In this document: in pieces, positions 20,842 to 46,395 of the stretch | Numbering within the stretch: the first letter of the stretch is position 1 | Layout of the letters: the number at the start of each line of letters is the position of its first letter | Source: Rebecca billardiae RCC1528 | Taxonomy: Eukaryota > Protista > Haptophyta | NCBI GenBank assembly: GCA_965240325.2 | Contig: OZ251230.1 | Span: forward strand, 1,736,001 to 1,800,000 | Direction: 5' to 3' | Length of the DNA stretch: 64,000 bases | Notes under the pieces: generated by a model | Told to the model about the DNA's origin: nothing | What the model saw: the letters and a program-made list of their open reading frames with translations, nothing else | The model's database searches: none | Translations under genes and position numbers: made by a program

Positions 20842-23800
20842 ATGGCGCCGTCGTGCGGCCGGGACTGCGTGATCGACCGCGTGCAGGACGCGGTGCAGCT
20901 GCGCATCCACGCCAGCTTCTACGCCCTCGGCTCGTTCATCGTGCGCCGACCGCTCGTGACGATCGTGCTCGCCGTCGCCGCCGCGCTCGCGTGCGCGAGC
21001 GGCCTCGCCGCGGGCCGCTGGGAGTCGCGCATCGAGTACAGTTATCTGCCGCGATCGATCCCGTCATTCGCGACGTACGAGCGGCAGCTCGAGCTGTACG
21101 GCGCGGCGCCGCGCGTCGAGGAGTTCAAGGCCGAGCCCATCAACCCGTCCGACTCCATCATCGAGAAGCGCTTCCTCCGCGCGCTGCTCGAGATCCACGA
21201 CGAGATTGTGGACTTTGAGGCGCGCGCGCCATCGGGCAAGGCGGTGGCGTTCGAGGACATCTGCGAGGAGCTGTACAAGGACGGCCCGTGCGTGGTGGAC
21301 AACGTGCTCACGGCGACCGGCCTCGAGGACCGGCGCGACCTGCTCAAGACGATGGACCAGCAGCAGATCGACGACTTCATCCGCGAGCAGCGCGACGCGC
21401 TCGAGCGATACCTCGGCGGCGTCGACGTGGACGACAAGGACAAGTCCATCTCCGTGCGGGTGGCGCGCTTCTATTACCTGGTGCGCCAGGTGTCGAACGA
21501 GCCGCAGCCGCTCTTCGGCGCCTCGGACCAGGCGCTCGCCGAGCGGCTCGCGTGGGAGGAGCGCTTCATCGCGATGACAAACAAGGCGGAGGCGGAGGGC
21601 ATGCGGCTGATGGGGATCGCCGGCCGCACGCTGGACGACGAGGTCGCGCGCAACGTGCAGTCGTCGACGCCGATCATGGGCGCGGCGATCAGCTCGATCC
21701 TGGTGTACATGGTCGTGCTGCTCGGCGGGCGCGCGGCCGTTGCCGGCTCGCGCGGCGACGACGGCGCCCGCCCGGCGCGCGGCGCGCGCGCTCTCACGCG
21801 GCTGCTCGCAGACAGCGCGCGCGGGTCGCGCGCGCTGCTCGGGGTGGGCGCGGTCGTCACGATCCTGCTCGCCGAGGCGGCGGGCTTCGGTCTGAGCTGC
21901 GCGCTGGGCGTGCCGCTCACCGACATCAGCCTGATGATCGTCTTCATCGTCGTCGGCGTGGGCGTCGACGACGCCATCGTCGTCGTCGAGTTTGTCAGAG
22001 CAGAGGATCCGTCGCTGCCGGTCGAGACGCGCGTGCCGAGGGCGCTCGCCTCGGCGGGCTCAGCGGTGTTCCTCACGTCGTTCACCAACCTGATCGCGTT
22101 CTGCGTCGCGTCCTGGGTGGACTTCCCGGGCGTGCGCTGGTTCTGCATCGCCGCGGGCATCGTCGTGTTCGTGCTCTTTGTGCTCACCGTGACTTTGTTC
22201 ACCGCGCTCCTCGTGCTCGACGAGCGCCGAGCATGGGCGAGCCGCTGGGACTGCTGCCCGTGCTGCGGCGGCGGCGGTGGCAGCTGCTGCTGCGCGCTGG
22301 CGCGGTCCGGGGGCGAGGACGAGGGCGTGTGGTGCCACGTCGGGCCCGTGCGCGCGGGGGGCGACGGACGGCGCCCCCCCCAGCCCGTGCCAGGGTCCCA
22401 GCCGGTGCCGCCCGTTCCGCTCGCCATTGTGCCAGTTGGCGCGGCCGGCGCGGCCGCGGCGGCCGAGGGCGGCAAGGCCGCGCGGCCGGCAGCGGCGCCG
22501 CGCTCATCGGGGGCGCACGGCGTCTTCAGGCGCGGCGTCGAGGCATATGCGCGCGTGGTCACGCGCCCGGCCGTCGCCGTCGTCGTCGTGCTCGCAGCGC
22601 TCTCCCTCGTGCCGGTCGGGTTTGTGCTCGCGGTCCCGCGGCTCAAGATCGGCGTTGAGTTCGAGGACAACTTTCCGGACGGGGTGCGTGCCGCCCCGGA
22701 CCCCCGAGCCCCGCGCACGGCCACAGCGCGTGCTGCCGCGCGCGCGCGCGCGCGCACTGTGCGGCGCTTCACGCCCGTGCGGCGCGAGCTCACGGCGCCT
22801 TCCACCGCGTCCGCGCCGCGCCGCGCGTCCGCAGTCGTACCTCTCCGAGTACTGGGTGCACACGGACGAGCACTACGAGGGACTGGCAGACAGCGCGCTG
22901 CTGCTGTTCGAGGGGGAGGACTGGGCGGAGGAGGGCGTGCAGGAGCGCGTGCTCAAGATGCTCGACGAGCTGGACGAGTACGACGACATCACGACCGACT
23001 TCAGCGCGTGGCTGCGCGACTACGACCACTACGTGTCGACGCGCGAGGCGCTGATCGAAGCCAAGCTGGACAACGGCACCGCGCCGCGGCGGCACGGCGA
23101 CGGCTTCTTCCGCGACCTGGGCAAGTGGCTGGAGAAGGAGGAACCGCAGTGCTCCAACGACAACTGCACGCGCTTCGTCGTGCCCAGGGCGTACACGAAG
23201 GACATCGTCTGGCGGGGCGAGGGCGACGACCGCCGCATCTTCGCCACGCGCTTCCGCGGCGGCATCCGTACGCCGGACACGCTGCAGGGCCGCGTGGACA
23301 CGATGCGCGCCTTCCGCCGCAAGGTGGAGGCGGAGCGCGACGGGCTGCGCGTCACGCCGTGGGCGTACTACTTCATGTTCTCCGACCGCGACGCGATCAT
23401 CTCGACGCTCATCTTCGAGACCCTCGGCTTCGCCGCCGCCGCCGTGCTCGGCTCGCTCCTCTTCTTCCTGCACGTGCTCACGGTCGGCGTGATCGCGGCG
23501 GGCATCGCGTGCGTCGACGGCGGCCTGTTCGTGGTCATGTGGGTCTGGGATGTCCCGCTCGACGTCTCGGCGTTCATCTGCCTCGCGATCTCGATCGGCC
23601 TGGCCGTCGACTACGTGGTGCACGTGGCGCACGCGTTCGAGCACTCGCCGGGCACGCCGCCCGAGCGCGCGCAGGCCGCGCTTGTCGAGATCGGCGGCGC
23701 CGTGTTCAAGGGCGGCATGTCGACGTTCCTGGGGATCGTCCTGCTCGCCGCCTCGAGCGCGGAGGTGTTCAGAATCTTTGTGCGCGCGCACGCGCGCGCA

Positions 23801-24171
23801 GCGGGGCGGCCGAGCGGCGGCGCGCGGAGGGCGGGAGTGCGCTCGGGCTGGGTGTGGCGCCCGAGCGCTGAGGCCTCCGCTCACGTGCCGATCGCGCCTC
23901 TGTCGCTCACATCCCCGCTGCTGCCGCCGCCCTGCGCACACCGCACGGCCGATGCGCACCTCTGCGCGCGGCACAGTTCAAGATGCTCTTCTCCACTGTG
24001 CTCCTGGCGCTCTTCATCGGCCTGGCGCTCTTCCCCGCGCTCGCAAGCTTGATCGGCGCGCTCATCCCGTCCAAGACCGCAGCTGTGGCGGCCGACGAGG
24101 CGGGTGGACGGCAAGACGACGATGAAGGCAAGACATTCTCGACAGCAGTCGGCGTCGTCGGCGCCAAGTAG
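20842..24171 (+). CDS. Patched/NPC1-like sterol-sensing-domain RND membrane protein, 3 exons
   Basis: GVGVDD (TM4) and SIGLAVDYVVH motifs, two lumenal domains. Introns 22684-22834 (FPDG|SYL) and 23780-23976 (FRIF|FKML) join three ORF-track frames into one Patched-family protein. Confidence 0.9.
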
Positions 24172-28550: not shown

Positions 28551-31357
28551 TCACATGACCGCGACCATGATCGCGATGAAGATCGTCATCGTGAACGTGA
28601 GCACGAAGGGCGCGCAGAGATACTGCACGAAAATGGCCGTGCTCATCGCCGTTCGGTTCTGCCCGTTGAGCGTGCACATGATCCTGCGGCGGCATGGCGC
28701 GGGCGCATCCGAGCGCAGCGCGCGAGCGCATCGGCTGGAGTGCGGGCGCGTGGCCGGGCGCCCCCACGCGATCTCCTGCGCGCCGGTGCGCGCCGCGCCC
28801 CCATCGCATCACGCGCGCACGCGCGCCGCGCGCACAGGACGTTGTTGGCGGTCGGCGTCGCGGCGACCACGAAGATGACCAGCAGGAACACCTGCTGGAA
28901 CGGGTGCGGGATCGAGCTGACAAAGAAGTTGGTCGTGCCCGCGATCACGAGCGCGATCGCCGGCATCGCGAGCAGCTTGGCGAACGCGATCGCCAGGCAC
29001 GCGCGCGGCGAGATCGCGCGGAAGTCCGGCCCCTTGCTCAGGCTCGCGCCCAGCGTGAGCAGGTTCACAGGCACGGCCGCGTCGCCCAGCTTGGAGATGC
29101 CGCTCAGCAGCCAGCCGAGCGGCGGCGCGGGCGATGACGGGCCCGGCACGAGCGCTGCGCGCGTGAAGGGGATCACGGCGAGGCACAGCCCGAGCAGCGT
29201 CGCGCGCACCGGAGGCACGAGGATCCGATCGATCGCGAGTAGGAGCATCTCCTGCGCACTCCAGAGCGCGCGCCGCGCCGTCGCCACGCGGCCGTGCGAC
29301 GGCTGCGGGTCGGGCTCCGAACGCGCATCGGCAAACTCGGAGGGCTCCGCCGACTCGTCGGCGGCGCTCTCTTCCTCGGGCAGCGACGGCTGGGCTCGGG
29401 GCGTCGGCGGCGCGAGCGCCGCGCCGTGCTGCGAGCCCACGCGCCCCACGCCCATCTCCGCCGCGGAGCGCCCGGACAGATCGTCAGTCACGAGCTCGTC
29501 GCCACCGAACAGGATGGAGGACGCGCGGCGCGGCGGCGGCGGCGGCGGGAGGCCCTCGACGTAAAAGCGCTCCAGCCGCCGGCTGTGCTCGCCGGTGCGC
29601 GGGTCGACGCACTCCACCTCGCGCGAGCGCATCCGCGGCGCCACGCGCGAGCCCGCCTCGCCGTCCGCCACGGCGTTCAGGTGCAGGGCGACGGTTCGCC
29701 GCTCGCCAGGCAGCAGCTCGGGCTCGGGCACCGGCTCGGCCGCGAGCCGCGCGGAGAAAACATCCCAGGGCTCCGAGAAGGCGCGCGCGAGGCGCTGCGC
29801 GGCGGGTGGCAGCCGCGGGGGCGAGTGCGGCGGGGGCCCCGTACCGCTGGCGCCGCCGCCGCCGTTTGACGTGCCCGGCGGCGCCTCGAGCAGCGCGTAT
29901 GCGTTCGCAGCGGTCGACGCGCGCGCGAGCGTGGCGCGCGCCGGCGCGGCCAACTTTGCGCTGGGCTGGAGCACGTCGGTCGGCGGCCCCGGCTGGGCCG
30001 AGACCGGCGTCAGCGCGCCGTTGGCGTCGGCCGCCCTCGCGAGCGCGTCGGCGTCGTCGCTCTCGGCGCCGAGCCCAACCGTCGGCTTGCGCTGCAGCAG
30101 CGACGCCTCCGACGCGGCCGCGCGCCTCCGCCCCAGGAACGGGACGGGGATGGCGCCTGAGAGCAGCGCGTCGCCCACCGCCCACTGCAGCATCGGGTAG
30201 GTGAGCTGGTAGACGGCAAGGTACACGAGCGGGTCGGTCGGCGGGAGCGAGGGCTTCGACGCGCGCAGCTCGCGCACCGCCGGCGACATGAGCGCGTCGT
30301 TCACCACCGAGAGGATGATGATCGGAAGACCCGTCTTGGGCGCACCGAGGCCGCAAGCGAGCACGGGGCAGGGGCACGGGCAGGTGGGCGCGTGCGTGCA
30401 CGCGCGCGCGCGCGGGTGTGGGACGGGCTGGGCGCGCGGGCGGTGCACGGGCCGTGCGCGCGGGGGCGGGGCGGGCTGTGGTGCGGGCACGCGCGTGCAC
30501 GGCCGCACCGAGTTGCCAAAGGCAACCGCCGCGATCATGCCGCGCTCGAAATCGGGCGCTGGCCGGGTGACGATTGCACACAGCATGCCGAGCGCAGCGC
30601 CACACGTGACGTAGACGAAGGGGAGCAGGGCGGCGAGCCAGGCCGAGGCGATCAGGTCGATGCTGGCGGAGCGGACGACGCTGTCGAAGAGCAGGCACGG
30701 GATGAGCAGCCGCGCGGCAATGGCCGACATGGCCTTGGCGCCCTCGGCCGGGATCGCGCCGAGACGGCCGAGCCACAGCCCGCCCACGACGAGCACGCAC
30801 GTCGTGCCGAGGCTCGAGAGCACGCCGACGAAGATGGCGAGGATGCCGCTGCGATCTCCCGACGTGGTCGGCCCGACGTAGAAGTCGTCCGTCGGCCCGA
30901 GCACGTCCGCAGCCGTCAGCGGCGGCGGCGGTGGCGAGTGCGGCGGGCACGGGATCTCGACGCCAGCCGTGGCCTCGGGGATGTTCAAGAGCGGCGGCAG
31001 CGGCGTGTTCACTGGGATGCCGTAGCACTCGCCCGACGCCCCCCCCGACGGGGCGACCTCGGTCGTGCGCAGCCAGGTGTACGCCTGGCAGCGCTCAGCC
31101 TGCGCGCACTCGTGCTCGCACGAATGCGCGTCTTCAAGAGTGCCGAACGCGAGCAGCGTTGGGCGGTGCCGCCCGTGCAGCTCCGCGGGCGAGACCAAGC
31201 TCTTGCCGCCCACGAGCGAGTAGCACGGCAGGGCCGCGCGCGCCCCAGCAGCTGCACACGCCCAGAGGGCGAGATGCCACCCTCGTCGGCTAGAAGCGCC
31301 GCGCCCGCCGCGCCGTGTTGCGTGATGCATCATCGGCGGTCCAAGGTGCGTCACCAT
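28551..31357 (-). CDS. PILS/auxin-efflux-carrier (AEC, Mem_trans) family transporter with N-terminal PAN/apple-like domain, 3 exons
   Basis: LLIPCLLF, AVAFGNS|TGLP, GDAAVPVNLLTLGA and TPTANNV|LIMC motifs. Introns 30335-30508 and 28684-28835; last exon ends ...IAIMVAVM* at 28551. Cys pattern CEHECAQAERCQAYTW...GECY after a signal peptide. Start may be one of the ATGs near 31330-31357. Confidence 0.85.
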
Positions 31358-32469: not shown

Positions 32470-34575
32470 CTATCGTACGAGTGACTAGAGTCGGCACGCC
32501 CCGACCGCCGCGGGCCAGGGCCGGGCATCGTTCGCTCCGGCCGCCGCCGCTGGCGGCGCCGGCCAGCCAGCCCGGGCTGCACCGGCCGGCGGCCTGCGGC
32601 CGCCCGCCGGCAGTGGTTGGTGGCAGCCGATGGAGGCCTGCCGTTCTGAACGTTCTCAAACGCGTTTGGGGCCTCGCCGTTCCGAACGGTTTGCCAAACG
32701 CTCCCAGTCTGGCTAAATGGCCGCGCGGCAAAGGCAAACTGCTGGCACGGCAAGGCCTGAACCTTGGCCATTACAAGACCACAGTCCTATTGCCATTGGC
32801 CAGGGCGCAGCCAGGCAGGGCCCTGGCCCGGCCCAGGCGGTGCCGGACCCCGCGGCCGTGCCCAGGCCCAGGGCCTCGGGCCAGGGCCAGGCAGTCGGGC
32901 CGACGCGAGACCGCGAAGTAGAATGAACCATTGCGCGTCGGGTATAGTCGATCTGACCCACAGAAACCACTACTGGGAGCTCTTCGTCGTAACGGTTCTA
33001 AGCCGTATAACTATAAGCGCGTCGCCGTCAGCGCCGCGCGGCGACTACTGCCTCGGGTCAGACTGACGTGAATAACTAATGTCGTCGTCGTCTAATCACT
33101 ACAGAGTACAGAGTGATGACTGGCGGATCTGACTGCTCGACGGCAACGCCGCCTAGAAACAACTGCCGACGATACTCTCATCGTCATCGATTATTCATCG
33201 TCACTTGCAGCAGCGGGGCAGCGCACTATGTTCTGCTCAGGCGGCGCCGGACCCCGCGCCCAGGGTCGGGCCGACGCGAGCGAGGTTCATTGCGCCTGAC
33301 TGATTCGTGCAGAGTGCCACGAGGTCGGCGACTTGGACGTGTGCGGGGCGCGTCGCCGCATACCAGATCTGGTCGGCAATGTCGTCGGCGACGAGCGAGA
33401 CCAGGTCCTTGTACACCGCATCCGCCTTCGCCTCGTCACCGCCGAAGCGCACGACGGAGAACTCGGTCTCGACGGCGCCGGGTGAGATGCACGTGACGCG
33501 CAGCGGCGTGCCGACGCTATCGTACGAGTGACTAGAGTCGGCACGCCCCGACCGCCGCGGGCCAGGGCCGGGCATCGTTCGCTCCGGCCGCCGCCGCTGG
33601 CGGCGCCGGCCAGCCAGCCCGGGCTGCACCGGCCGGCGGCCTGCGGCCGCCCGCCGGCAGTGGTTGGTGGCAGCCGATGGAGGCCTGCCGTTCTGAACGT
33701 TCTCAAACGCGTTTGGGGCCTCGCCGTTCCGAACGGTTTTGCCAAACGCTCCCAGTCTGGCTAAATGGCCGCGCGGCAAAGGCAAACTGCTGGCACGGCA
33801 AGGCCTGAACCTTGGCCATTACAAGACCACAGTCCTATTGCCATTGGCCAGGGCGCAGCCAGGCAGGGCCCTGGCCCGGCCCAGGCGGTGCCGGACCCCG
33901 CGGCCGTGCCCAGGCCCAGGGCCTCGGGCCAGGGCCAGGCAGTCGGGCCGACGCGAGACCGCGAAGTAGAATGAACCATTGCGCGTCGGGTATAGTCGAT
34001 CTGACCCACAGAAACCACTACTGGGAGCTCTTCGTCGTAACGGTTCTAAGCCGTATAACTATAAGCGCGTCGCCGTCAGCGCCGCGCGGCGACTACTGCC
34101 TCGGGTCAGACTGACGTGAATAACTAATGTCGTCGTCGTCTAATCACTACAGAGTACAGAGTCACTAGAGTGATGACTGGCGGATCTTAGACTGCTCGAC
34201 GGCAACGCCGCCTAGAAACAACTGCCGACGATACTCTCATCGTCATCGATTATTCATCGTCACTTGCAGCAGCGGGGCAGCGCACTATGTTCTGCTCAGG
34301 CGGCGCCGGACCCCGCGCCCAGGGTCGGGCCGACGCGAGCGAGGTTCATTGCGCCTGACTGATTCGTGCAGAGTGCCACGAGGTCGGCGACTTGGACGTG
34401 TGCGGGGCGCGTCGCCGCATACCAGATCTGGTCGGCAATGTCGTCGGCGACGAGCGAGACCAGGTCCTTGTACACCGCAGCCGCCTTCGCCTCGTCACCG
34501 CCGAAGCGCACGACGGAGAACTCGGTCTCGACGGCGCCGGGTGAGATGCACGTGACGCGCAGCGGCGTGCCGACG
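32470..34575. repeat. Tandem duplication (units 32470-33516 and 33517-34575) including the 3' end of the SDR gene
   Basis: Units of 1047 and 1059 bp that differ by +1, +9 and +2 bp insertions and one substitution that I could see. Confidence 0.95.
33237..33516 (-). pseudogene. Truncated duplicate of the SDR 3' end
   Basis: Encodes VGTPLRVTCISPGAVETEF...GSGAA*, as in the SDR C-terminus, but lacks the Rossmann fold and YxxxK. Confidence 0.9.
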
Positions 34576-35117
34576 AGGTCGTGGCGCGCCGAGGCTGTGA
34601 AGGCCGTGAGGGCGTGCTTGGTGGCCGCGTAGACCGAGCCGCCGGCGTACGTCTCGTGCCCGGCGATACTCCCGATGTTGATCACGTGGCCCTTGCTGCG
34701 GGCCTTCATCTCCTTGAGGAAGGTCGAGGCGACCATGATGGCTGCCGTCACGTTTGTATTGATCATCGTCTGCACAGGCGCGAGCTCGTTGGCGTCCGCA
34801 GCGTTCTTGCCGAGGGCGAGGCCCGCGTTATTCACGAGGATGTCGACCGCCCTGAACTCCTCGGGGAGCTCGGCCGGCAGATTGACGATGCGCTCAAACT
34901 CCTTTGACAGGTCGATCGTGATGGTGTGGCATGCGGCGCCGTGCTTTGAGGACAGTTCCTGAGCCAGCTGCTCCAGCCGCTCCGCACGGCGAGCCACCAG
35001 GACGAGCTTACGGCAGCCCTCCTCGGCGAAGCGCCGCGCCGTAGCCTGACCGATGCCAGCGCTCGCGCCAGTGACGAGCACCACCTTGTCCGCGAGGCTC
35101 TGCGTGGCGTACGGCAT
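34296..35117 (-). CDS. Short-chain dehydrogenase/reductase, YdfG/YMR226C-like NADP-dependent 3-hydroxy-acid dehydrogenase
   Basis: TGASAGIG, ARR, NNAGLALG, GSIAG, YAATK, PGAVETEFSVVRF; ATG at 35117. Confidence 0.92.
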   Translation of the reverse strand: MPYATQSLADKVVLVTGASAGIGQATARRFAEEGCRKLVLVARRAERLEQLAQELSSKHGAACHTITIDLSKEFERIVNLPAELPEEFRAVDILVNNAGLALGKNAADANELAPVQTMINTNVTAAIMVASTFLKEMKARSKGHVINIGSIAGHETYAGGSVYAATKHALTAFTASARHDLVGTPLRVTCISPGAVETEFSVVRFGGDEAKAAAVYKDLVSLVADDIADQIWYAATRPAHVQVADLVALCTNQSGAMNLARVGPTLGAGSGAA

Positions 35118-35423
35118 CGTGTGCGTGATTTGAGGTTGGCGGCGACTCCAGGTTCCGCCGTTCCGGAAGCTTCCCACGCCAAGGACAGTGACAGGATGAC
35201 ACCCTTTTTTGCCCACGCCAACCAGGGACGGGCGGGCGCTGATCAAGAGCTGGGCAGCCGGGCGTGCAATTCACCGCCATCGAGATTCGAGCTCGTTGAC
35301 CCGTTCTGATCCTGTGAGGCGCTAACAACCTCATCAATTCCGAGCATCGGCCAGCCGAAGACGCGAACGAGTTGCATAGCACCAGTCCCGGTCGTGGGAT
35401 GTCGTGGAGGGACCAAAGGCTCG

Positions 35424-37838
35424 TCACAGCAAGAAGGACTCGGTGTGCACGTCGCACGCGTGCGCGCGCGCGTGGATGCGAGCGTCGTCCAGAAGCGGCT
35501 GCGGGCCGCACGCAAACACGGCCGCGCGGCCGTCCCGGCTGGCCGCGGCCTGCGCGGCCGCCCGGACGAGCGTGTCCAGATCCGGCCGGCCGAGTGTGAA
35601 CGGTGGGAGCCCGGTCGCGTCGCCGGTGCCGGTGCCGGCGTCGGCGCGCGTGCCAGCGGTGCGTGGCGCGCCGGCGCGCGTCACGTGCAGCGCGAGCTCG
35701 ACCACGGCGCCCGAGGGCAGCGTCGTCGTGCCGCGGCTGAGCAGCTCGCGCCGAGCGGCGGCCTGCAGGCCCACCGTGCCGTGCTCGCCCTCGGCGTCCG
35801 GCCGGTCCGCCTCGGCGGGCGCGAGCAGGTGGCCCAGCCAGCGCAGCGTGCTGGCATCCCGGACCGTCCACACGAGCGTGAGCGCGCGCAGCCGCGGCAG
35901 GCTGGGCGCGGAGTGCAGCACGGAGATGAGCGGCGTGATACCCACGCCGCCGCCCACGAGAAGCAGCGCGCTGTACGCGCCGAGCTCGATCGCGGGCGCG
36001 CCGTGCGGCCCGCGCAGCAGCACGGGCGCGTCCGGCAGCGGCGCGGCGTCCGTGATGCCCCGCTGCCCCGCCGCACCGTCGGCGCCGCCGCTCGCGCACG
36101 CCGCCTGCGCCGCCTCGCGCAGCGCGCGCGTGAACGTGCCCGGGCCCATGTCCTTGACCAGGAAGCGCGCGGTCTGCGCGCCCGGCGCGCACGCGAGCGA
36201 GAACGGATGCGCCGCGCCGAGCCCGCGGACGGTGACGAACATGTACTGGGCGGCGCTGTGCGCGACGGGCGGCGTGGCCGTGCCGCCGACGGCGACGACC
36301 CTGTTGCGGCGCTTCAGCGAGGAGAGCGCGCCGGGCATGGGCAGCTCGAGCAGCGTGTGCTCGCCGTCGGTGCGCACGATCGCCGCGCGCCAAGCCGGCC
36401 GCGCGCGCAGCCGCGGCAGCAGCACGCGGCACAGCCACACCAGCGCCCACGCGGCGAGGGGCACGCCCATTGCCGGCGCGAGCGACGGCACGTGCACGGC
36501 GGCGAAGGCGAACGTGAGCTTCGTCAGCACGGCGTGCGCGCACCAGAACGCCTCCCACGCGCGCCGGCGGACGGGTGGAAGGGCCGCCAGCACTGAGAGC
36601 GTCGCCGCCGCCCAGCACGCCAGTCCAAAGGCCGGCAGCGCGCCCGACGCCCCGTGCGGCAGGAGCGGCGAGCTGCTCCCGAGGGAGGGAACGCTCAGCG
36701 CGCCGTGCACGCACATCGTCAGCCAGAGCAGCACGCCCGCCGCGCGGTGGTGGCGGACGGAGCGCTCGAAGGGCTGCGCGCCGAGCAGCGCGAGCGGACC
36801 GTAGTGCGCCGCGGGCACGCTCACCACGAGCAGCTGCCAGAACGCACACCCGCCCAGGGCTCGCCGCACCGCCGGCCCGCCCGCGCCGCCATCGACGGCG
36901 ACGAAGGCGACGTACGCGAGCAGACCTGCGACGTAGACGGCCCAGAAGAGGAGTTCCGCGCCCGTCGCCGTGCGCACGCCGCGCGCGATCGAGCGCGCCA
37001 CGTGCCCAAGCCCCGCCCCTGACGCGCCCGATCGGCCGGGCGGCGGCGGAGTGCCCATTGGCTGGGCCAGCCAGTGCGCCACCGTGCCTGGCTTCAGCCC
37101 CGAGGCGCGCGCGCGCGCTCGTGCCAGCAGCGCGGCGCCCAGCATCGCCAGAAGAAGGCAGCCGGCGAGCACAGCGCCGCCGACGTTGAGCGCCGGCGGG
37201 AGCAGGCTCTGCGTCCCCGCGGCCACCACGCCGCTCCCATCCGACCCCGGCCCGCCCGCGCCGGACGCGCCCGACATCAGGTCGATGGAGCGGCTCGCGC
37301 CGCGCGCGTCCGGCGCGTGCGCGTCGAGCAGGGCGCTGGAGCTCGGGTTGTACGACCAAAGCACGACGACGCCGTCGGCGCCGAGGTCGACGTCGTCGTC
37401 GCCGTCCGGGGACATGCGCAGCTCGAACTCCACGGTGAGCGTGCCGCCGCTCCCGCCCGCCACCTCGGACGAGGACGAGAGCAGGAACGAATCCGGCTTG
37501 CGGTCCGAGTCGGAGAGCGCCTGGTCGCGCAGCTTGTACGCGCGCACCGTATCGGCGTTGCCGAGGACCGCGTCGGCGCCCGCCATCGAGGAGGACGTGC
37601 CGAAGCCGACGCCGACCCAGCCACCGGCGTGCGGGCTGCGCACCGCGCCGCGCAGTGTGCGCGTCTCCTCTGCCGCCTCCTCTCCGTCGCCATCCCCCGA
37701 CTGCTGCGCACGACGCCGCTGTCGCCGCCTGTCGGCCGAGCTCTGGACGGACCACGAGAAGCCGACAGCGCCATCTTGCAGGCTGACGAAGTTGGTGTAG
37801 CCCGAGACCTTGAGCGCGTCGCCGTCGCCGCTGCTGCT

Positions 37839-37869
<31 letters not shown>

Positions 37870-38840
37870 TCCCCACCTGCGGAGGCGGATGCCTCGGGCG
37901 GCGAGGGCGGCGGTGAGGGCGGTGGTGATGGCGAGGTCGAGGACGGCGGTGGCTGCGGCGGCGGCGGCGAAGGCGGCGGTCCAGGCGAGGGCGAGGGCGG
38001 CGGCAAGGGTGGCGGTGAACGCGGCGGTGGAGGCGAGGGCGGCGGCGAGGGCGGCGGCGGACTCGGCGGCGGCGGCGGTGACGGGGGCGGTGACGGCGGA
38101 GAGGGCGGCGGCAGCGGATTCACACGCGGCGGCGGCGGCAGGTACGGCGGCGGTGCTGGCGGCGGTGGCGCTGACGGTGGCGGCGGGCGCGAGGGTGGCG
38201 GCGGCGGCCTAGGGGATGGAGGCGATGGAGGCGGGCGTGGTGGCGGCGGATGCGGCGGCGACAGCGGCGGCGGTGGTGATGGCGGCAGCCGCGGAGGCGA
38301 AGGTGATGGTGGCGGGCTGGACGGCGGTGGCGACGGCGAGGGAGACGGCGTGGGCTGCTGCACGACATTGACAGCGGGCGCCGAGTGCACCGCGTTGAAG
38401 TCGCCGCACAGCGCCTCGATCGTCCACGTCCCCGACGTGGGCGCGCGAACCGAAGACCATGTGCGCTGCGACGTCTTCGTCCGGTCTGGTTGGCACGCGC
38501 CATTGGACGTCTTGGCGATGACCTCAAAGTCGGAGCGCGAGGTGATGGTGAAGCTGTACAGCCCGTTCGGCGTGTACCCAGACGACAGGCTGCTCGGCGC
38601 CTCGATCGTACACAGCCCCAGGCCACCCGCTTGCTTGTTGCCGGCGGCCATGCCGCCAACGGGCTGTCCAACGGCGAACGAGGGCGAGCAGCCGTGGAAA
38701 TCTGGGTGCGCCGAGGCCTCACGGGGCAGATCGAGGTGGACGAGGATGGCCAGCAGGCCGGCGGTCCAGCGCACGACGGCGGCCGAGCGCCGTGCCGAGC
38801 GACGCTGTTGCATCGCTCGCACCAGGCCGCTGCACCCCAT
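35424..38840 (-). CDS. Reeler-like / Pro-rich stalk / DOMON / ferric reductase-NADPH oxidase family protein, copy L
   Basis: Signal peptide; reeler-like YTPNGLYSFTIT...WSSVRAPTSG; SPPP repeats; DOMON GWVGVGF..SMAGAD..LWSY..AH; two bis-His helices (HRAAG..CVH; HAVL..AVH); HPFS (FAD); LLVGGGVGITP and FACGP (NADPH); terminal ESF. Confidence 0.9.
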
Positions 38841-39204
38841 TGGCTCGACGCGAGGTGGTGTGAAGAACTGCAATGTCTGAATCCGTCAGTTCCGCCAGGC
38901 TTTCCAGCAACAAGGACCATCAAATACCTTGATGATCCTTTCAGCAACAAGGTCGAGCTGTAGCCGGGATGGCTTGGAGCTTGCTCTTCATGATGTTGTG
39001 GCGCGGACCAAAGAAGGGCGAAAAGGAGAAGGCCGCACGGGCAAGCGAACCTTGGTCGCTGGACAGGTGCGCCGAGAGATTCGGAAATCAGACCGTGCCC
39101 GGCCGGTCCGGAGCGGTGCGGTGATGATGAGCTGGAGAGCAGCGCGGGGCCGCCGAGCCGGTCGGATCGATCTGGACCGAGGTGGACCCTGCTCGGTCAC
39201 GACA

Positions 39205-42200
39205 ATGAGCCTCATGAGGTGCATCGGCCTGGTGCGAGCGATCCACCGGCGTCGGTCGGCACGGCGCTCGGCCACCTCAATGCGCTCGACCGCCGGCCTG
39301 GTGGCCATCCTCGTCCACCTCGATCTGCCCCGTGAGGCCTTGGCTTATCCGGATTTCCACGGCTGCTCGCCCTCGTTCGCCGTTGGACAGCCGGTGGGCG
39401 GCATGAACGCCGGCGACAAGCAGGCGGGTGGCCAGGGGCTGTGCACGATCGAGGCGCCGGGCAGCCTGTCGTCGGGGTACACGCCGAACCAGCTATACAG
39501 CTTCACCATCACCTCGCGCTCCGACTTTGCGGTCGCCTCCAAGACGTCCAACGGCGCGTGCTTCACAGACCGGACAAAGTTATCGGAGCGCACATGGTCC
39601 GAGGTGCTCGCGCCCGATTCGGGCACGTGGACGATTGAGGCGATTTGCGGCCGCTGGGGCGGGGTGTACTCGGCGCCCGCTGTCAATGTCGCGCCGCAGC
39701 CGTCGCCGCCGCCGTCCAACCCGCCACCATCGCCCCCACCTCGGCGACCGCCGCCGTCACCTCCGCCGCCCAGCCCGCCGCCGTTTCCGCCGCCACCGCG
39801 CCCACCACCATCGCCCCCACCCCCGAGCTCACCGCCGTCGTCGCCGCCATCGTCGCCACCAGTACCGCCGCCTTCGCCGCCGCCGAGTCCACCGCCCTCG
39901 ACGCCACCGCAGCCACCGCCGCCGCCTCCGCCGTCGCCGCCACCTCCACTACCGCCGCCGCCATCGCCGCCGCCATCGCCGCCGCCGGGGCTGCCACCCT
40001 CGCCGCCGCCCGTGCCGCCTCCGTCACCGCCTCCGTCGCCACCGCCAGCACCGCCACCCACTCAGCCACCATCGCCGCCGCCAACACCGCCGCCAACACC
40101 GCCGCCGTCGCCGCCGCCGTCGCCGCCGCCAGCACTGCCGCCCTTGCCGCCGCCGTCACCGCCGCCATCACCGCCACCGTCGCCTCCACCGCCATCCCCG
40201 CCGCCATCCCCGCCGCCAGCGCCACCGCCGTCGCCGCCACCAGCGCCGCCACCTACGCCACCACCACCGCCCCGCGTCCTGCCACTGCCGCCGCCATCAC
40301 CACCCTCGCCGCCACCGTCGCCTCCGCCATCGCCGCCGCCGTTGCCACCGCCCCGGCCACCGCCATCGCCGCCACCCGTGCCGCCGCCCTCGCCGCCGCC
40401 CTCTCCGCCGCCCTCGCCACCACCGACGCCGCCGCCATTGCCACCGCCATCGCCGCCACCGCCATCACCGCCGCCGTCGCCACCGCCGTCGCCACCGCCA
40501 GCTCCGCCGCCCGTGCCGCCGCCCTCGCCACCGCCCTCGCCGCCGCCGTCGCCACCGCCCTCGCCGCCGCCCCTGCAGCCGCCGAGCCCGCCGCCATCGC
40601 CCCCGCCTGCAACTCCGCCGTCGCCGCCGCCGTCACCGCCGCCATCGCCGCCACCATCACCGCCGCCACCACCCCCACCCTCACCCCCGCCCATGCCACC
40701 GCCTTCACCTCCGCCGAGGCTGCCGCCGAGGCCGCCACCGTCGCCCCCGCCCTCGCCGCCACCGCCTCCACCGCCGTCGCCGCCGTCGTCACCGCCGCCA
40801 TCACCGCCGCCATCACCACCGCCCTCACCGCCGCCCTCGCCGCCCGAGGCGTCCGCCTCCGCAGGTGGCGATGACGACGACGACGACGGCAGCAGCAGCG
40901 GCGACGGCGACGCGCTCAAGGTCTCGGGCTACACCAATTTCGTCAGCCTGCAAGATGGCGCTGTCGGCTTCTCGTGGTCTGTCGAGAGCTCGGCCGACAG
41001 GCGGCGACAGCGGCGTCGTGCGCAGCAGTCGGAGGATGGCGACGGAGAGGAGGCGGCGGAGGACACGCGCACGCTGCGCGGCGCGGTGCGCAGCCCGCAC
41101 GCCGGTGGCTGGGTCGGCGTCGGCTTCGGCACGTCCTCTTCGATGGCGGGCGCTGACGCGGTCCTCGGCAACGCCGATACGGTGCGCGCGTACAAGCTGC
41201 GCGACCAGGCGCTCTCAGACTCGGACCGCAAGCCGGATTCGTTCCTGCTCTCGTCCTCGTCCGAGGTGGCGGGCGGGAGCGGCGGCACGCTCACCGTGGA
41301 GTTCGAGCTGCGCATGTCCCCGGACGGCGACGACGACGTCGACCTCGGCGCCGACGGCGTCGTCGTGCTCTGGTCGTACAACCCGAGCTCCAGCGCCCTG
41401 CTCGACGCGCACGCGCCGGACGCGCGCGGCGCGAGCCGCTCCATCGACCTGATGTCGGGCGCGTCCGGCGCGGGCGGGCCGGGGTCCGATGGGAGCGGCG
41501 TGGTGGCCGCGGGGACGCAGAGCCTGCTCCCGCCGGCGCTCAACGTCGGCGGCGCTGTGCTCGCCGGCTGCCTTCTTCTGGCGATGCTGGGCGCCGCGCT
41601 GCTGGCACGAGCGCGCGCGCGCGCCTCGGGGCTGAAGCCAGGCACGGTGGCGCACTGGCTGGCCCAGCCAATGGGCACTCCGCCGCCGCCCGGCCGATCG
41701 GGCGCGTCAGGGGCGGGGCTTGGGCACGTGGCGCGCTCGATCGCGCGCGGCGTGCGCACGGCGACGGGCGCGGAACTCCTCTTCTGGGCCGTCTACGTCG
41801 CAGGTCTGCTCGCGTACGTCGTCTTTGTCGCCGTCGATGGCGGCGCGGCGAGCGCAGGCGGCGCGGGCGGGCCGGCGGTGCGGCGAGCCCTGGGCGGGTG
41901 TGCGTTCTGGCAGCTGCTCGTGGTGAGCGTGCCCGCGGCGCACTACGGCCCGCTCGCGCTGCTCGGCGCGCAGCCCTTTGAGCGCTCCGTCCGCCACCAC
42001 CGCGCGGCGGGCGTGCTGCTCTGGCTGACGATGTGCGTGCACGGCGCGCTAAGTGCCGCAGCCCTCGGGAGCAGCTCGCTGACACTGCTGCCACACGGGG
42101 CGTCGGGTGTGATGCCGGCCTTTGGCGTGGCGTGCTGGGCGGCAGCGACGCTCTCGGTGCTTGTGGCCCTTCCACCCGTCCGCCGGCGCGCGTGGGAGGC

Positions 42201-43338
42201 CTTCTGGTGCGCGCACGCCGTGCTGACGAAGCTCACCTTCGCCTTTGCCGCCGTGCACGTGCCGTCGCTCGCGCCGGCGATGGGCGTGCCTCTCGCCGCG
42301 TGGGCGCTGGTGTGGCTGTGCCGCGTGCTGCTGCCGCGGCTGCGCGCGCGGCCGGCGTGGCGCGCGGCGAGCGTGCGCACCGACGGCGAGCACACGCTGC
42401 TCGAGCTGCCCATGCCCGGCACGCTCTCCTCCTCCAAGCGCGGCAACATGGTCGTCACCGTCGGCGGGCGCGGCGGCGGGGCCGGCACGGCTGCGCCGCC
42501 CGCTGCGCACAGCGCCGCCCAGTACATGTTCGTCAGCGTCCGCGGGCTCGGCGCCGCGCATCCGTTCTCGCTCGCGTGCGCGCCGGGCGCGCAGACCGCG
42601 CGCTTCCTGGTCAAGGACATGGGCCCGGGCACGTTCACGCGCGCGCTGCGCGAGGCGGCGCAGGCGGCGTGCGCGAGCGGCGGCGCCGACGGTGCGGCGG
42701 GGCAGCGGGGCATCACGGACGCCGCGCCGCTGCCGGACGCGCCCGTGCTGCTGCGCGGGCCGTACGGCGCGCCCGCGATCGAGCTCGGCGCGTACAGCGC
42801 GCTGCTTCTCGTGGGCGGCGGCGTGGGCATCACGCCGCTCATCTCCGTGCTGCACTCCGCGCCCAGCCTGCCGCGGCTGCGCGCGCTCACGCTCGTGTGG
42901 ACGGTCCGGGATGCCAGCACGCTGCGCTGGCTGGGCCACCTGCTCGCGCCCGCCGAGGCGGACCGGCCGGACGCCGAGGGCGAGCACGGCACGGTGGGCC
43001 TGCAGGCCGCCGCTCGGCGCGAGCTGCTCAGCCGCGGCACGACGACGCTGCCCTCGGGCGCCGTGGTCGAGCTCGCGCTGCACGTGACGCGCGCCGGCGC
43101 GCCACGCACCGCTGGCACGCGCGCCGACGCCGGCTCCGGCACTGCGACGAGCCTCCCACCGTTCACACTCGGCCGGCCGGATCTGGATGCGCTCTTCCGG
43201 GCGGCCGCACAGGCCGCGGCTAGTCGATACGGCCGCGCGGCCGTGTTTGCGTGCGGCCCGCAGCCGCTTCTGGACGACGCTCGCATCCACGCGCGCGCGC
43301 ACGCGTGCGACGTGCACACTGAGTCCTTCTTGCTGTGA
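39205..43338 (+). CDS. Reeler-like / Pro-rich stalk / DOMON / ferric reductase-NADPH oxidase family protein, copy R (longer stalk)
   Basis: Same motifs as copy L in inverted orientation; ATG at 39205; Pro/Ser stalk about 39694-40845. Confidence 0.9.
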   Translation: MSLMRCIGLVRAIHRRRSARRSATSMRSTAGLVAILVHLDLPREALAYPDFHGCSPSFAVGQPVGGMNAGDKQAGGQGLCTIEAPGSLSSGYTPNQLYSFTITSRSDFAVASKTSNGACFTDRTKLSERTWSEVLAPDSGTWTIEAICGRWGGVYSAPAVNVAPQPSPPPSNPPPSPPPRRPPPSPPPPSPPPFPPPPRPPPSPPPPSSPPSSPPSSPPVPPPSPPPSPPPSTPPQPPPPPPPSPPPPLPPPPSPPPSPPPGLPPSPPPVPPPSPPPSPPPAPPPTQPPSPPPTPPPTPPPSPPPSPPPALPPLPPPSPPPSPPPSPPPPSPPPSPPPAPPPSPPPAPPPTPPPPPRVLPLPPPSPPSPPPSPPPSPPPLPPPRPPPSPPPVPPPSPPPSPPPSPPPTPPPLPPPSPPPPSPPPSPPPSPPPAPPPVPPPSPPPSPPPSPPPSPPPLQPPSPPPSPPPATPPSPPPSPPPSPPPSPPPPPPPSPPPMPPPSPPPRLPPRPPPSPPPSPPPPPPPSPPSSPPPSPPPSPPPSPPPSPPEASASAGGDDDDDDGSSSGDGDALKVSGYTNFVSLQDGAVGFSWSVESSADRRRQRRRAQQSEDGDGEEAAEDTRTLRGAVRSPHAGGWVGVGFGTSSSMAGADAVLGNADTVRAYKLRDQALSDSDRKPDSFLLSSSSEVAGGSGGTLTVEFELRMSPDGDDDVDLGADGVVVLWSYNPSSSALLDAHAPDARGASRSIDLMSGASGAGGPGSDGSGVVAAGTQSLLPPALNVGGAVLAGCLLLAMLGAALLARARARASGLKPGTVAHWLAQPMGTPPPPGRSGASGAGLGHVARSIARGVRTATGAELLFWAVYVAGLLAYVVFVAVDGGAASAGGAGGPAVRRALGGCAFWQLLVVSVPAAHYGPLALLGAQPFERSVRHHRAAGVLLWLTMCVHGALSAAALGSSSLTLLPHGASGVMPAFGVACWAAATLSVLVALPPVRRRAWEAFWCAHAVLTKLTFAFAAVHVPSLAPAMGVPLAAWALVWLCRVLLPRLRARPAWRAASVRTDGEHTLLELPMPGTLSSSKRGNMVVTVGGRGGGAGTAAPPAAHSAAQYMFVSVRGLGAAHPFSLACAPGAQTARFLVKDMGPGTFTRALREAAQAACASGGADGAAGQRGITDAAPLPDAPVLLRGPYGAPAIELGAYSALLLVGGGVGITPLISVLHSAPSLPRLRALTLVWTVRDASTLRWLGHLLAPAEADRPDAEGEHGTVGLQAAARRELLSRGTTTLPSGAVVELALHVTRAGAPRTAGTRADAGSGTATSLPPFTLGRPDLDALFRAAAQAAASRYGRAAVFACGPQPLLDDARIHARAHACDVHTESFLL

Positions 43339-43579
43339 CGAGCCTGTGGTCCCTGGAGGGCATGCCACCACCACGGCGGGACTGACACGGTGCTGTAGTT
43401 AGTAGGCTAATTGTAAGCCAGTAGTAGTTAGTGACTGACAAAGTGTAGTAGCAGTATGAGCAGATAGTATAGTCGTAAGTAGTAAGTAAGCTATGTATCT
43501 GCCACATTGACCCTCCTTCAGTCCTTGATTGCCCAAGCCCGCGGAGGCGCGGACGGGTCCCGGGGCCGGGCCGGGGGGC

Positions 43580-44443
43580 ATGGCGACGACCATCTCGACG
43601 GCGCGCCTCTTCGGCGGGACGCTCCAGCGGCTCACACACCGCTCGGCGGCGACGGCGTGCGACATGACGTTCGCCGTATATCTGCCGCCCCAAGCAGCGC
43701 AGCAGCCCGTGCCCACGCTCTACTGGCTGTCCGGCTTGACGTGCACGGATGAGAACTTCACGCATAAGAGCGGCTTCGCGCGCGCTGCGGCCGAGCGTGG
43801 CCTGTGCGTGGTTGCGCCCGACACCTCACCGCGCGGGGTTAATATTCCTGGGGAAGACGATTCGTATGATTTTGGCTCAGGCGCTGGCTTCTACGTGGAC
43901 GCGACGCGCGCACCGTGGAGCGCGCATTACAACATGTACACGTACGTGCGCGACGAGCTGCCGCAGCTGGTGGAGTCGACGTTCGCGAGCGAGGTGCTTC
44001 CGGGCCGCCGCTCTGTTTCGGGCCATTCGATGGGTGGGCATGGCGCTCTCACGCTCTTCCTCAAAAACCCAAGCGCGTACGTCTCCGTCTCGGCGTTTGC
44101 GCCGATTTGCGCTCCAACCAACTGCCCGTGGGGTCAGAAGGCCTTCAAGGGCTACCTGGGGAGCGTCGACGCGGGCCGCGCGCACGACGCGAGCGAGCTC
44201 GCCCGCACATTCGATGCACGGGTGAAGCACGCTATTCTCGTCGATCAGGGTACGTCAGACACATTCCTCTCGGCAGGCGGTGTGGACCAGCTGCAGCCGA
44301 ATGCCCTGCGCGCCGCATGCGCCGCAAGCGGGCTGCCGCTCGAGCTGCGCATGCAAGACGGGTACGACCACTCTTACTACTTCATCTCCAGCTTCATCGA
44401 TGACCACGTGCGCTTCCACGCAAGCGCACTCCAGGCTGCATGA
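43580..44443 (+). CDS. ESD: S-formylglutathione hydrolase (esterase D)
   Basis: LYWLSGLTCTDENF, PDTSPRG, GAGFYVDAT, GHSMGGHGAL, CPWGQKAF, GYDHSYYF. Confidence 0.96.
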   Translation: MATTISTARLFGGTLQRLTHRSAATACDMTFAVYLPPQAAQQPVPTLYWLSGLTCTDENFTHKSGFARAAAERGLCVVAPDTSPRGVNIPGEDDSYDFGSGAGFYVDATRAPWSAHYNMYTYVRDELPQLVESTFASEVLPGRRSVSGHSMGGHGALTLFLKNPSAYVSVSAFAPICAPTNCPWGQKAFKGYLGSVDAGRAHDASELARTFDARVKHAILVDQGTSDTFLSAGGVDQLQPNALRAACAASGLPLELRMQDGYDHSYYFISSFIDDHVRFHASALQAA

Positions 44444-44625
44444 CTACTCCATGGCAACACCCAGCCGGGCCGCCTGGCGGCCGGCGCCTCAATCGGACTG
44501 AATTACTGAATTATAAGCCCGAAGAATTCGGGCATAATACTAGCAGCGTGCATGGAGCCCGCTGTCGGCGCGGCGGGCACGACCGCACGAACCACTCGTC
44601 GCCAGACTAGATATACTATTATTCA

Positions 44626-46395
44626 TGGCCCGCGGTGCAGGGCGGAGCGCGTAGCGTGGAGCCCCGCCGGGGGCCCTCACTACGTTGTCAAAAAGATCTT
44701 TTGATCAAAGAAAAGGGGACGGGGGACGATTTTGAGGGCTGTTGGAGGGTGAATTTTCGCTTTTTCGAGGGGTACGTACCGTACATTGCTGTCTATCCGC
44801 AAGACGCGATTGACGAAATAGGCGCGCCCGCCAATTCGCCGTATGTCGATGGACGGACGTGGGATCAGATACCCCGGGGGTGAAACAAGTGAGTAGTTCC
44901 CAGTCCTACCCCTCTTGTTTGTATGCTGAAGTACGAGTTTGCCGAGCGACGTTTGATTGTTTTGGGTCGAAAACAGCTATGAGGCCAGATTCTTTTGAAT
45001 AGTGCTTGTTCAAATACGTTACCCGCCTGTCTCGATGGATGAACCGCCTCGTCATATTAAAAGAGTTTCTTTTCAATAGCGCTTGTCCAACCAAGTTACC
45101 CGTCTGCCTCGATGGATGAACCTCCTGTGTCATAATGAAGGGACGATTGTTTTGAATAGCGCTGGTTAAACCAAGTTACCCGCCTGCCTCGATGGATGAA
45201 CCTCCTTTGCCATAATGAAAGAAAAACGGGTTACCCGCCCGCCAGCGTCTCGTGACGAGGACGGGTGCCCAAGCGGCAAGCGCGCACATCATGATCATCG
45301 CCGTCGGCGGGCCCATCTTCGGCCGGCTCGAGCTGATGCACATCACGACGCTCAAGCAGGCGCTGTCCGTACCGACGTTGGCGCGCCTCCAGCGGATGGT
45401 CGACAAAGCACCCGTGGGCGAAGGAGGACCACAATCATGGCCGAGTCATCGGAGACGTCGCTGACCTCGCGGCTTCAAACATCAACCGCTCAGCCGGTTG
45501 CCACCGCGGCCGAGCGGTGCGCGCTCGCCACCGCGGCCGGCGCTGTGCACGGGCGTGCTGAGCCCGGGCCGCGTGAGCTCGCCCACCTCGCCCGGCGCGC
45601 ACGCCGACGCCGCCACCGCGGCTCGGCGGCCGGACTCATCTCGGCCCGCAGCGCGTGCGTCCCCCCGCGGCGGCGCGCGCCGCCGTCGCCGCCGCGCAGG
45701 CCGTGCACTCGGTGGATGAGGAGACGGCCCTGCTGCGCGCGGAGCGCTGCGCGCCGCGCGCTGCTCCTGCTGCGGCGCGCAGTAGTCCGCTCGTCCGCCC
45801 CGCGGGCTCGCCACGGAGCCGACGAGCGCGATGACGACAATCGAATGAGCACGAGTGCGCACGGAGGCGCTGGGCGCCGAGCTGGCGAAGCGCGGCGCCG
45901 AGCTCGACGCGCTGCGCGACGCGGCGACGGACGCGCTGGGCGCGCGCGGCGCCCTCGTCGCGACGCCCCGTGCAGCAGCTCGAGCAGCCAGCTGTGGAGT
46001 CAGACGGCCGTCGACTCGAGGGCGCCACCGCGCCGGGTGAGTGAGCACGCACGGGCTCCGCCTCGGTCGGAGGCTGGCTGGCCGCCGCCGTGGCTTCGAG
46101 GCCGACGCGGCGGAGGAGGCGGCGGGCGAGCACGGTGGCGCGGTGGAGCAGGCGCGCACGCGCGGCGGCAGGCGCGACCCGCCGCTCGCCTCGTTCCACC
46201 CCGAGCTCCGCGCTCGGTCTCGCCTCTCGGTGCGCGGCTGCGCAGCGCCGTGAGCGCAGGCTGGGGTCCGTACTTCTTCGCGCGGCCCGCGGCGACAGTC
46301 CTCATCGGCCCGCCATGTTGACCAGACTGAGACAGCAGCCGACGGAGGGTGCACCGCGGGCCCCTAACTACGTTGGTTCTACGGAAGGACCGCCA
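44626..46395 (+). mobile_element. Asymmetric-TIR/hairpin element, family 1 copy C (diverged, terminal hairpin collapsed)
   Basis: TGGCCCGCGGTGCAGGGCGG left end; right end TGCACCGCGGGCC-CCTAACTACGTTGGTTCTACGGAAGGACCGCCA; cargo shared with copy D. Confidence 0.78.
44993..45220. repeat. About 80-bp tandem repeat, 3 copies, inside copy C
   Basis: Core TT(G/C)AATAGYGCT...GTTACCCG(C/T)CTG(C/T)CTCGATGGATGAACC repeated three times. Confidence 0.85.

Follow-up and report, generated by a model that had tools for sequence, protein, structure and literature searches.

Introduction

A clade of eFRE proteins that features one or more extracellular DOMON domains was described by Zhang et al. in 2013 as model M10, with members from Naegleria gruberi, Albugo laibachii (F0X089), and Phytophthora infestans (D0MUZ3), and the supplement of that study annotates D0MUZ3 and F0X089, the two stramenopile entries that were retrieved, as "1 DOMON, 1 TM" (TM, transmembrane) (PMC3591440). 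FRRS1/SDR2 proteins join a reeler domain and a DOMON domain to cytochrome b561, as was correctly stated in an earlier, sequence-only reading of the DNA discussed here; CG8399 is a known ferric reductase and human SDR2 a putative one (PMC10691727). CYBDOM proteins, which carry a haem in their DOMON domain, act as reductases of ferric and cupric substrates (PMC10784544). A stretch of 64,000 nucleotides from the haptophyte Rebecca billardiae RCC1528 (contig OZ251230.1, positions 1,736,001 to 1,800,000; the whole stretch is referred to as the window, and positions are those of the window) carries a pair of genes, L and R, whose products share the same order of parts from the N- to the C-terminus: a signal peptide, a head, a Ser/Pro rod, a poly-Asp linker, a DOMON-like domain, an extra TM helix, and a FRE module. 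The two proteins are probably paralogous surface flavocytochromes of the FRE class that export electrons by way of a DOMON haem, most likely to ferric or cupric complexes.

Haptophytes are major marine primary producers in which reductive iron uptake and the sources of extracellular reactive oxygen species (ROS) are poorly assigned to genes, and L and R together offer a concrete candidate for a self-powered surface reductase with three haems. The sequence-only reading implied that a DOMON domain on an NADPH-dependent FRE is new; however, this combination was already reported in 2013 (PMC3591440). The core of L and R is a catalogued architecture, and it is the rod and the nearly orphan head that are additions found described nowhere. 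No DOMON-FRE protein with an N-terminal head on a Ser/Pro rod was found in the literature searched, and the tables of PMC3591440 contain neither the term "Reeler" nor a haptophyte.

Organization of the L and R genes

L lies in a long open reading frame (ORF) at 35424-38873 (-) and R in a long ORF at 38929-43338 (+), so that the two are arranged back to back. The coding sequence of L spans 35424-38840 (-) with the ATG at 38840, encodes 1138 amino acids plus a stop codon, and has a GC content at third codon positions (GC3) of 0.89 in frame. The coding sequence of R spans 39205-43338 (+), encodes 1377 amino acids plus a stop codon, and has its ATG at 39205 or 39214; the similarity between L and R begins at 39214 on the R side. 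The start codons were chosen by L-R similarity and by reading of the DNA, and the resulting gap between the two ATGs is 364-373 bp, in agreement with the head-to-head pair with ATGs about 365 bp apart that the sequence-only reading had described. The divergent intergenic region at 38841-39204 is a unique spacer between the inverted arms and is presumed to be a bidirectional promoter.

The arms of the inverted duplication span ~35390-43372 and extend ~34 nt beyond both stop codons. The nucleotide identity between L and R is 93-98% in the body and 74% in the head and 5' rod, and the protein identity is 94% in the body and 79% in the head. As judged from the sequences, and as part of the best overall explanation, L and R are probably two functional paralogues that arose by inverted duplication in an alga with a GC-rich and intron-poor genome.

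The FRE-type catalytic module

The membrane part of both proteins is a six-helix ferric reductase domain (FRD), which is followed by a dehydrogenase domain for flavin adenine dinucleotide (FAD) and reduced nicotinamide adenine dinucleotide phosphate (NADPH). The FRD of L, at 36408-36950 (-), matches Ferric_reduct (PF01794) with 37.1 bits and carries the histidine pairs H698/H712 and H769/H783, and that of R, at 41779-42342 (+), matches with 36 bits and carries H932/H946 and H1004/H1018. The FAD/NADPH dehydrogenase domains at 35427-36395 (-) in L and 42355-43335 (+) in R match NAD_binding_6 (PF08030) with 46.6 and 47.6 bits, respectively, and both feature the motifs HPFS, GGGVGITP, and CGP. The Pfam cut-offs are 28 bits for Ferric_reduct, 22.2 bits for NAD_binding_6, and 22 bits for FAD_binding_8 (PF08022); the last of these was matched only by R and below threshold, at 17.5 bits, and the HPFS motif is present in both copies. 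Of the complete NADPH/FAD/bis-haem module claimed for each gene by the sequence-only reading, the NADPH-binding and haem parts are borne out by the two above-threshold Pfam matches, the two Hx13H pairs, and the dehydrogenase motifs, all found in both copies, and the FAD-binding part is probable. The Pfam search of L and R revealed no cytochrome b561 domain, and the NCBIfam matches are of a generic FNR type only.

The same NADPH/FAD/bis-haem module forms the core of NOX enzymes, and the dehydrogenase part of L and R matches the structures of NOX5 and NOX2 in the PDB with E-values of ~6e-7 to 2e-6. The FAD region aligns with NOX5, and also with the FRE-type reductase encoded on a metagenome contig discussed below. 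L and R could be ROS generators, that is, NOX-like superoxide producers in which the head, in the manner of insect reeler proteins, would sense or tether microbes or glycans and would target an oxidative burst or the cross-linking of the wall. Several features of the module make this reading rather unlikely. NOX enzymes feature Hx12H in TM5 (His209/His222 in NOX2), whereas in L and R both of the haem-bearing helices, TM3 and TM5, carry Hx13H. The NOX signature comprises four positions, which include the equivalent of His-119, located 4 residues after the second His of TM3, and a Thr-Gly in TM4 (PMC3591440). At the position equivalent to His-119, L and R have Ser (CVHGALS) instead. A PDB sequence search with the TM part returned nothing, and since this part has no alignment to NOX, the Thr-Gly position is not reliably placed. 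EF-hands and other NOX regulatory parts are absent from the Pfam results for L and R. Additionally, a DOMON haem beyond the outer haem would suit metal or protein acceptors. Because the His-119 equivalent is missing, the module is assigned to the FRE type, and the metalloreductase class is favoured over NOX.

A metagenome scan produced a single relative of the body, an 825-residue FRE-type reductase encoded at 23-2500 of contig Ga0194129_10069733 (L002), which is 26% identical to the body of L and R. This protein features a long multi-helix N-terminal extension and has no DOMON domain, rod, or head. It shares with L and R the motif KDMGPGTF and a C-terminal CD[VF]HTE motif and may mark a wider FRE subfamily in protists. 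A word-index search with the body found nothing new; this search was swamped by low-complexity candidates, and its blank says little.

The DOMON-like domain and the acidic linker

The DOMON-like domain is located at 37266-37820 (-) in L and at 40909-41463 (+) in R, and the two copies are 98% identical. PF03351 is matched with 25.5 and 25.1 bits, and with 30.4 bits (E-value 5e-7) by the isolated domain of L, all of which fall short of the 32.7-bit cut-off. The candidate haem ligands in L are Met419, located in GFGTSSSMAGAD, and His508, located in LLDAHAP, which are 89 residues apart. The Met/His spacing is 84 residues in the DOMON domain of HYP1 (M90/H174; PMC10784544) and 93 residues in that of CG8399 (M286/H379; PMC10691727). 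In both of these proteins the haem Met lies within a comparable Ser/Asp-rich motif, and the Met/His pair ligates a b-haem (PMC10784544, PMC10691727). For haem binding by the DOMON-like domain of L and R, this spacing is suggestive only. Of the extracellular DOMON domain with Met/His ligands that the sequence-only reading had described, the Met/His pair is present and the topology fits; the sub-cut-off score leaves the label "DOMON" probable, not proven. Neither a word-index search (a blank that says little) nor a scan of bacterial and archaeal genomes found relatives of the domain. The PDB sequence matches obtained for it were rejected as spurious summed matches to WD40 proteins.

The DOMON-like domain is preceded by an acidic linker, which in L is located at 37821-37877 (-) and contains 11 consecutive Asp residues, with (GTC)10 at 37839-37868. 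The poly-Asp run of R is 6 residues long and lies at ~40880-40900. A charged loop, RRRQRRR...DGDGEEAAEE, is found inside the DOMON-like domain of L. The poly-Asp (GAC)n run and this charged loop could be a cation-binding site or a dibasic processing site.

Signal peptide and topology

The signal peptide of L comprises residues 1-44 (38709-38840 (-)) and features an Arg-rich n-region, a hydrophobic WTAGLLAILVHL, and then ASA before HPDF. Cleavage, placed by the -3/-1 rule, is predicted between ASA and HPDF in L and between ALA and YPDF in R. The predicted +1 residue is His in L (38706-38711) and Tyr in R (39343-39348).

The extra TM helix, TM0, follows the DOMON-like domain and is located at 37122-37178 (-) in L, with a hydropathy of 2.36, and at 41551-41607 (+) in R. 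In L it is followed by an Arg-rich, predicted cytoplasmic loop of 57 residues (36951-37121 (-)). TM0 and the Arg-rich loop would place the DOMON-like domain outside, ahead of an FRD whose N- and C-termini are both cytosolic. The sequence supports a layout in which the signal peptide is followed by an outside DOMON, TM0, an Arg-rich inside loop, a six-helix FRD, and an inside dehydrogenase. The parts stand in the right order and topology for a chain that would run from NADPH through FAD and two haems to the DOMON, which supports the self-sufficient electron exporter proposed by the sequence-only reading.

The Ser/Pro rod

The rod of L (37878-38363 (-)) consists of 162 residues, of which 64% are Pro and 19% Ser, and contains 12 SP3+ motifs encoded by imperfect repeats of 12-66 nt. 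The rod of R (39688-40863 (+)) consists of 392 residues, 71% Pro and 17% Ser, with 51 SP3+ motifs. The DNA of the R rod contains a repeat array with a 12-nt period at 39832-40844, and both rods are encoded by imperfect repeats of this period. These lengths are close to the stalks of about 150 and 385 residues that had been read for L and R from the sequence. One Tyr was seen in the rod of L, and Tyr is outside the eight commonest rod residues in both copies. This scarcity of Tyr indicates that the rods are not classical cross-linking extensins, which combine SP3-5 with Tyr motifs. A polyproline-II helix rises ~0.31 nm per residue, and if fully extended in this conformation the rods would be stiff, with a reach of ~50 nm for L and ~120 nm for R.

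The rod bears on a further reading, in which L and R would sit in the membrane and supply electrons to the cell covering itself or to redox enzymes that are secreted or bound to the wall, and the rod and head would anchor the two proteins in the extracellular matrix. The analogy for this reading is cellobiose dehydrogenase, whose DOMON-like cytochrome domain feeds copper enzymes. With an extended rod, however, the head would sit 50-120 nm from the DOMON and would present no partner to the haem unless the rod bends. The nearby genes in the 64-kb window encode no partner enzyme, and the electron-donor reading is highly unlikely.

The head domain

The head is a domain of 116 residues, located at 38361-38708 (-) in L (residues 45-160) and at 39346-39693 (+) in R (residues 48-163), and the R head is 79-81% identical to the L head. 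The Cys-containing tip noted in the sequence-only reading corresponds to this domain, which carries four Cys in both copies. An exhaustive phmmer search with the head against 1.84 billion representative proteins returned two matches, P0001 and P0002, one of which is a true relative. P0001, a repetitive protein of 4289 residues, was rejected, as its match merely sums 14 weak stretches. P0002 (E-value 4e-4) is a stand-alone secreted protein of 189 residues with its own signal peptide and is 37% identical to the head. It shares with L and R the start H-P-x-[FY]-[HY]-G-C, the four Cys, which are invariant in L, R, and this sole outside relative, and 34 invariant columns. The Logan contig that carries P0002 (SRR20015798, L001:460-1029) is AT-rich (40% GC), and the poly(A) at the contig end indicates an expressed mRNA of another eukaryote. 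A His/Asn-rich insertion of ~50 residues is found within the domain of P0002. Scans of metagenome and viral contigs with the head found no further members, and a word-index search with the head profile found nothing new, though such blanks say little. By these searches the head family appears to be nearly orphan.

The fold of the head was approached by several methods. Pfam searches with the L head, the R head, and P0002 gave no match at E-values up to 10, which includes no match to Reeler (PF02014), with the qualification that the HMMER filters may drop matches above E ~0.1. PDB sequence and profile searches with the head returned nothing credible. In a language-model feature search, the clusters closest to the L head were those of Reeler (PF02014), with a score of 0.82, and P0002 was independently placed nearest to the same clusters with a score of 0.91, with 199 of 256 features shared and 29 of 30 matches in Reeler clusters. 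By the tool's own calibration such a result is a lead and not proof. On these language-model features, the chance that the head is reeler-like is about even or somewhat better. The possibility of a His-brace or copper site at the start of the mature protein (HPDFHGC) was also considered and was rejected, as neither His is invariant: position 1 is Tyr in R, and the second His of L and R is replaced by Tyr in P0002.

The head evolves fast, with a nonsynonymous substitution rate (dN) of 0.147 and a ratio to the synonymous rate (dN/dS) of 0.70. Fast divergence is often seen in binding surfaces, and together with the tie of the head family to reeler "defense protein" clusters in language-model features it would be in line with the microbe or glycan sensor of the superoxide-producing reading. 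However, the dN/dS ratio is not greater than 1 and is no proof of positive selection. For an electron-exporting FRE, the fast divergence of the head and the two rod lengths would suggest two specificities or two reaches.

Reading frame and selection

The local DNA is 75-79% GC and contains many overlapping ORFs of 400-900 residues in other frames, and at such a high GC content ORF length alone is weak evidence for genes. The Pfam domains appear solely in the frame of the L and R coding sequences, and the head, DOMON, and FRE parts have GC3 values of 0.84-0.94, similar to those of neighbouring genes. A single frame is maintained in both copies from the head through rods of very different length into the DOMON-like domain, and the differences in body length between L and R are all whole codons. 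The dN/dS ratios between L and R, determined by the Nei-Gojobori method, are 0.13 for the linker and DOMON, 0.17 for the FRD, and 0.41 for the FAD/NAD part, which indicates that both copies are under purifying selection. The dS varies along the gene from 0.01 in the extra helix and loop to 0.21 in the head, and this unevenness fits patchy gene conversion of the body.

A contig assembled from a public run (L003, a Logan contig of ERR14847148) is 100% identical to the window at 43290-44649, and this identity indicates that the same organism was sequenced in that run. Its start falls within the final 49 nt of R, on the margin of the inverted repeat, which is where a true two-copy sequence is expected to break in a short-read graph.

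Although very GC-rich DNA holds long ORFs in many frames, the gene models were read from DNA, and the exact L and R proteins are not in a collection of 15 billion proteins, it is very improbable that the gene models are wrong or the genes dead, with the rod an intron or non-coding repeat or one copy a pseudogene or palindromic assembly artefact, given the common frame through unequal rods, the in-frame body indels, the body dN/dS well under 1 with GC3 periodicity, arms that are 2-26% divergent and have rods of unequal length, as those of a chimeric-read palindrome would not, and a public contig that matches the window exactly and breaks at the repeat edge.

Proposed mechanism

In the proposed mechanism, L and R would be type-I-like surface proteins whose membrane part is a FRE-class flavocytochrome. 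Cytosolic NAD(P)H would reduce FAD, and electrons would pass from FAD to the inner haem and then to the outer haem of the six-helix FRD. The outer haem would reduce a third haem, a putative b-haem ligated by the Met/His pair of the extracellular DOMON, and the DOMON, held at the membrane by the one extra helix, would donate single electrons to an external acceptor. The acceptor would most likely be a ferric (or cupric) complex, for reductive uptake, by analogy with FRE/FRO enzymes and CYBDOM reductases. N-terminal to the DOMON, the poly-Asp linker and a stiff Ser/Pro rod would carry the small, disulphide-bonded head, which probably binds the cell covering, a polysaccharide, a microbe, or a particle. 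An extended rod would mean that the head cannot sit at the haem; more probably, the head extends through the cell covering and serves for binding or anchorage. Purifying selection and patchy gene conversion would keep the body near identical while the heads and rods diverge.

Several points weigh against the reading of L and R as surface reductases of ferric or cupric complexes. FRE-type enzymes can also leak superoxide, and the acceptor is unreadable from sequence. In algae with secondary red plastids an aromatic +1 residue can mark plastid-directed proteins; the signal peptide by itself is no proof of a plasma membrane location in such an alga, and with Tyr at +1 in R the signal peptide alone leaves the location of R unsettled. 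The DOMON score falls short of the curated Pfam cut-off, and AlphaFold models of the DOMON-like domain (from 2 sequences) and of the head (from a 3-sequence alignment) both have a predicted local distance difference test score of 40, which is too low to judge the fold or the Met/His geometry of the former and too low for a fold comparison of the latter. The gene models were read from DNA, and removal of the rod by splicing is possible. Additionally, genes for iron uptake (a permease, a multicopper oxidase, or ISIP-like proteins) were looked for in the 64-kb window and none was found.

Genomic context

The pair is flanked by a short-chain dehydrogenase gene at 34296-35246 (-) and by a gene for an esterase D/S-formylglutathione-hydrolase-like protein at 43529-44443 (+). 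The window also encodes an RRM protein and an MFS carrier. The products of three further long ORFs are a hybrid histidine kinase that includes a receiver domain (3204-5825 (+)), a sterol-sensing/Patched-like protein (20698-23871 (+)), and a Mem_trans (auxin-efflux-carrier-like) protein (28643-31357 (-)), none of which has a link to iron uptake. The GC content of the window is 67%, and its genes are mostly single ORFs. These features are compatible with the genome of Diacronema lutheri, which is streamlined, 73% GC, and 45% single-exon.

Comparison with known systems

The closest described layout is that of the eFRE-DOMON clade, which shares with L and R an outside DOMON, probable in L and R, one extra TM helix, and a core of FRD, FAD, and NADPH domains that is of the FRE type and not the NOX type. 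No rod or head has been reported for this clade and its data set contains no haptophyte, and the likeness to L and R is one of layout. Should the core turn out to be no more than an iron-regulated DOMON-FRE like those of oomycetes and Naegleria, L and R would be ordinary members of this family with decorative additions. Two natural rod lengths on a near-identical enzyme provide a ready-made test of the effect of rod length.

Yeast FRE1, plant FRO2, and NOX2/NOX5 share with L and R the Ferric_reduct, FAD, and NAD(P)H core, the four haem His residues, and the HPFS and GxGxGxTP motifs. These enzymes have no extracellular haem domain, and L and R differ from the NOX proteins by the missing signature His and regulatory parts. 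In the plant CYBDOM proteins HYP1/CRR and in AIR12, as proposed for L and R, the b-haem of a DOMON domain is the outermost station of a trans-membrane electron chain. These plant proteins, however, receive their electrons from ascorbate by way of cytochrome b561 and lack a rod and head.

The rod has its counterpart in chimeras of hydroxyproline-rich glycoproteins (LRX, PERK, pherophorins, and algal agglutinins), in which SP3-5 repeats space a globular head from an anchor. L and R differ from these chimeras in that they have no Tyr cross-linking motifs and in that the anchor is a redox enzyme and not a kinase or a wall domain. The insect reeler proteins Noduler, BmReeler1, and Hdd11 are, like the algal head, small Cys-containing domains; they are secreted and beta-rich, and no alignment-based similarity between them and the algal head was detected. 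P0002 is a stand-alone secreted protein like these insect proteins, which form its nearest language-model clusters.

FRRS1, SDR2, and CG8399 resemble L and R in an N-terminal adhesion-type head, possibly of the same fold, a Met/His DOMON, which is putative in L and R, and a di-haem membrane conduit. Should the reeler-like nature of the head be borne out, finding such a head again beside a DOMON on another electron conduit would be a useful clue. A reeler domain and a haem DOMON may even form an old extracellular cassette that was joined independently to cytochrome b561 in animals and to an NADPH-dependent FRE in this alga, the head being a true but very divergent reeler domain, though this is unlikely. 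Were it so, the reeler head would have a direct part in catching whatever substrate or target the DOMON passes electrons to, and the two rod lengths (~50 and 120 nm) would define two distances across the cell covering at which capture takes place. The animal proteins are fed with electrons from ascorbate by cytochrome b561, whereas L and R feature an FRD with its own FAD/NADPH dehydrogenase. Additionally, L and R insert a Ser/Pro rod of 162-392 residues between the head and the DOMON-like domain, and they carry a head without a Pfam Reeler match.

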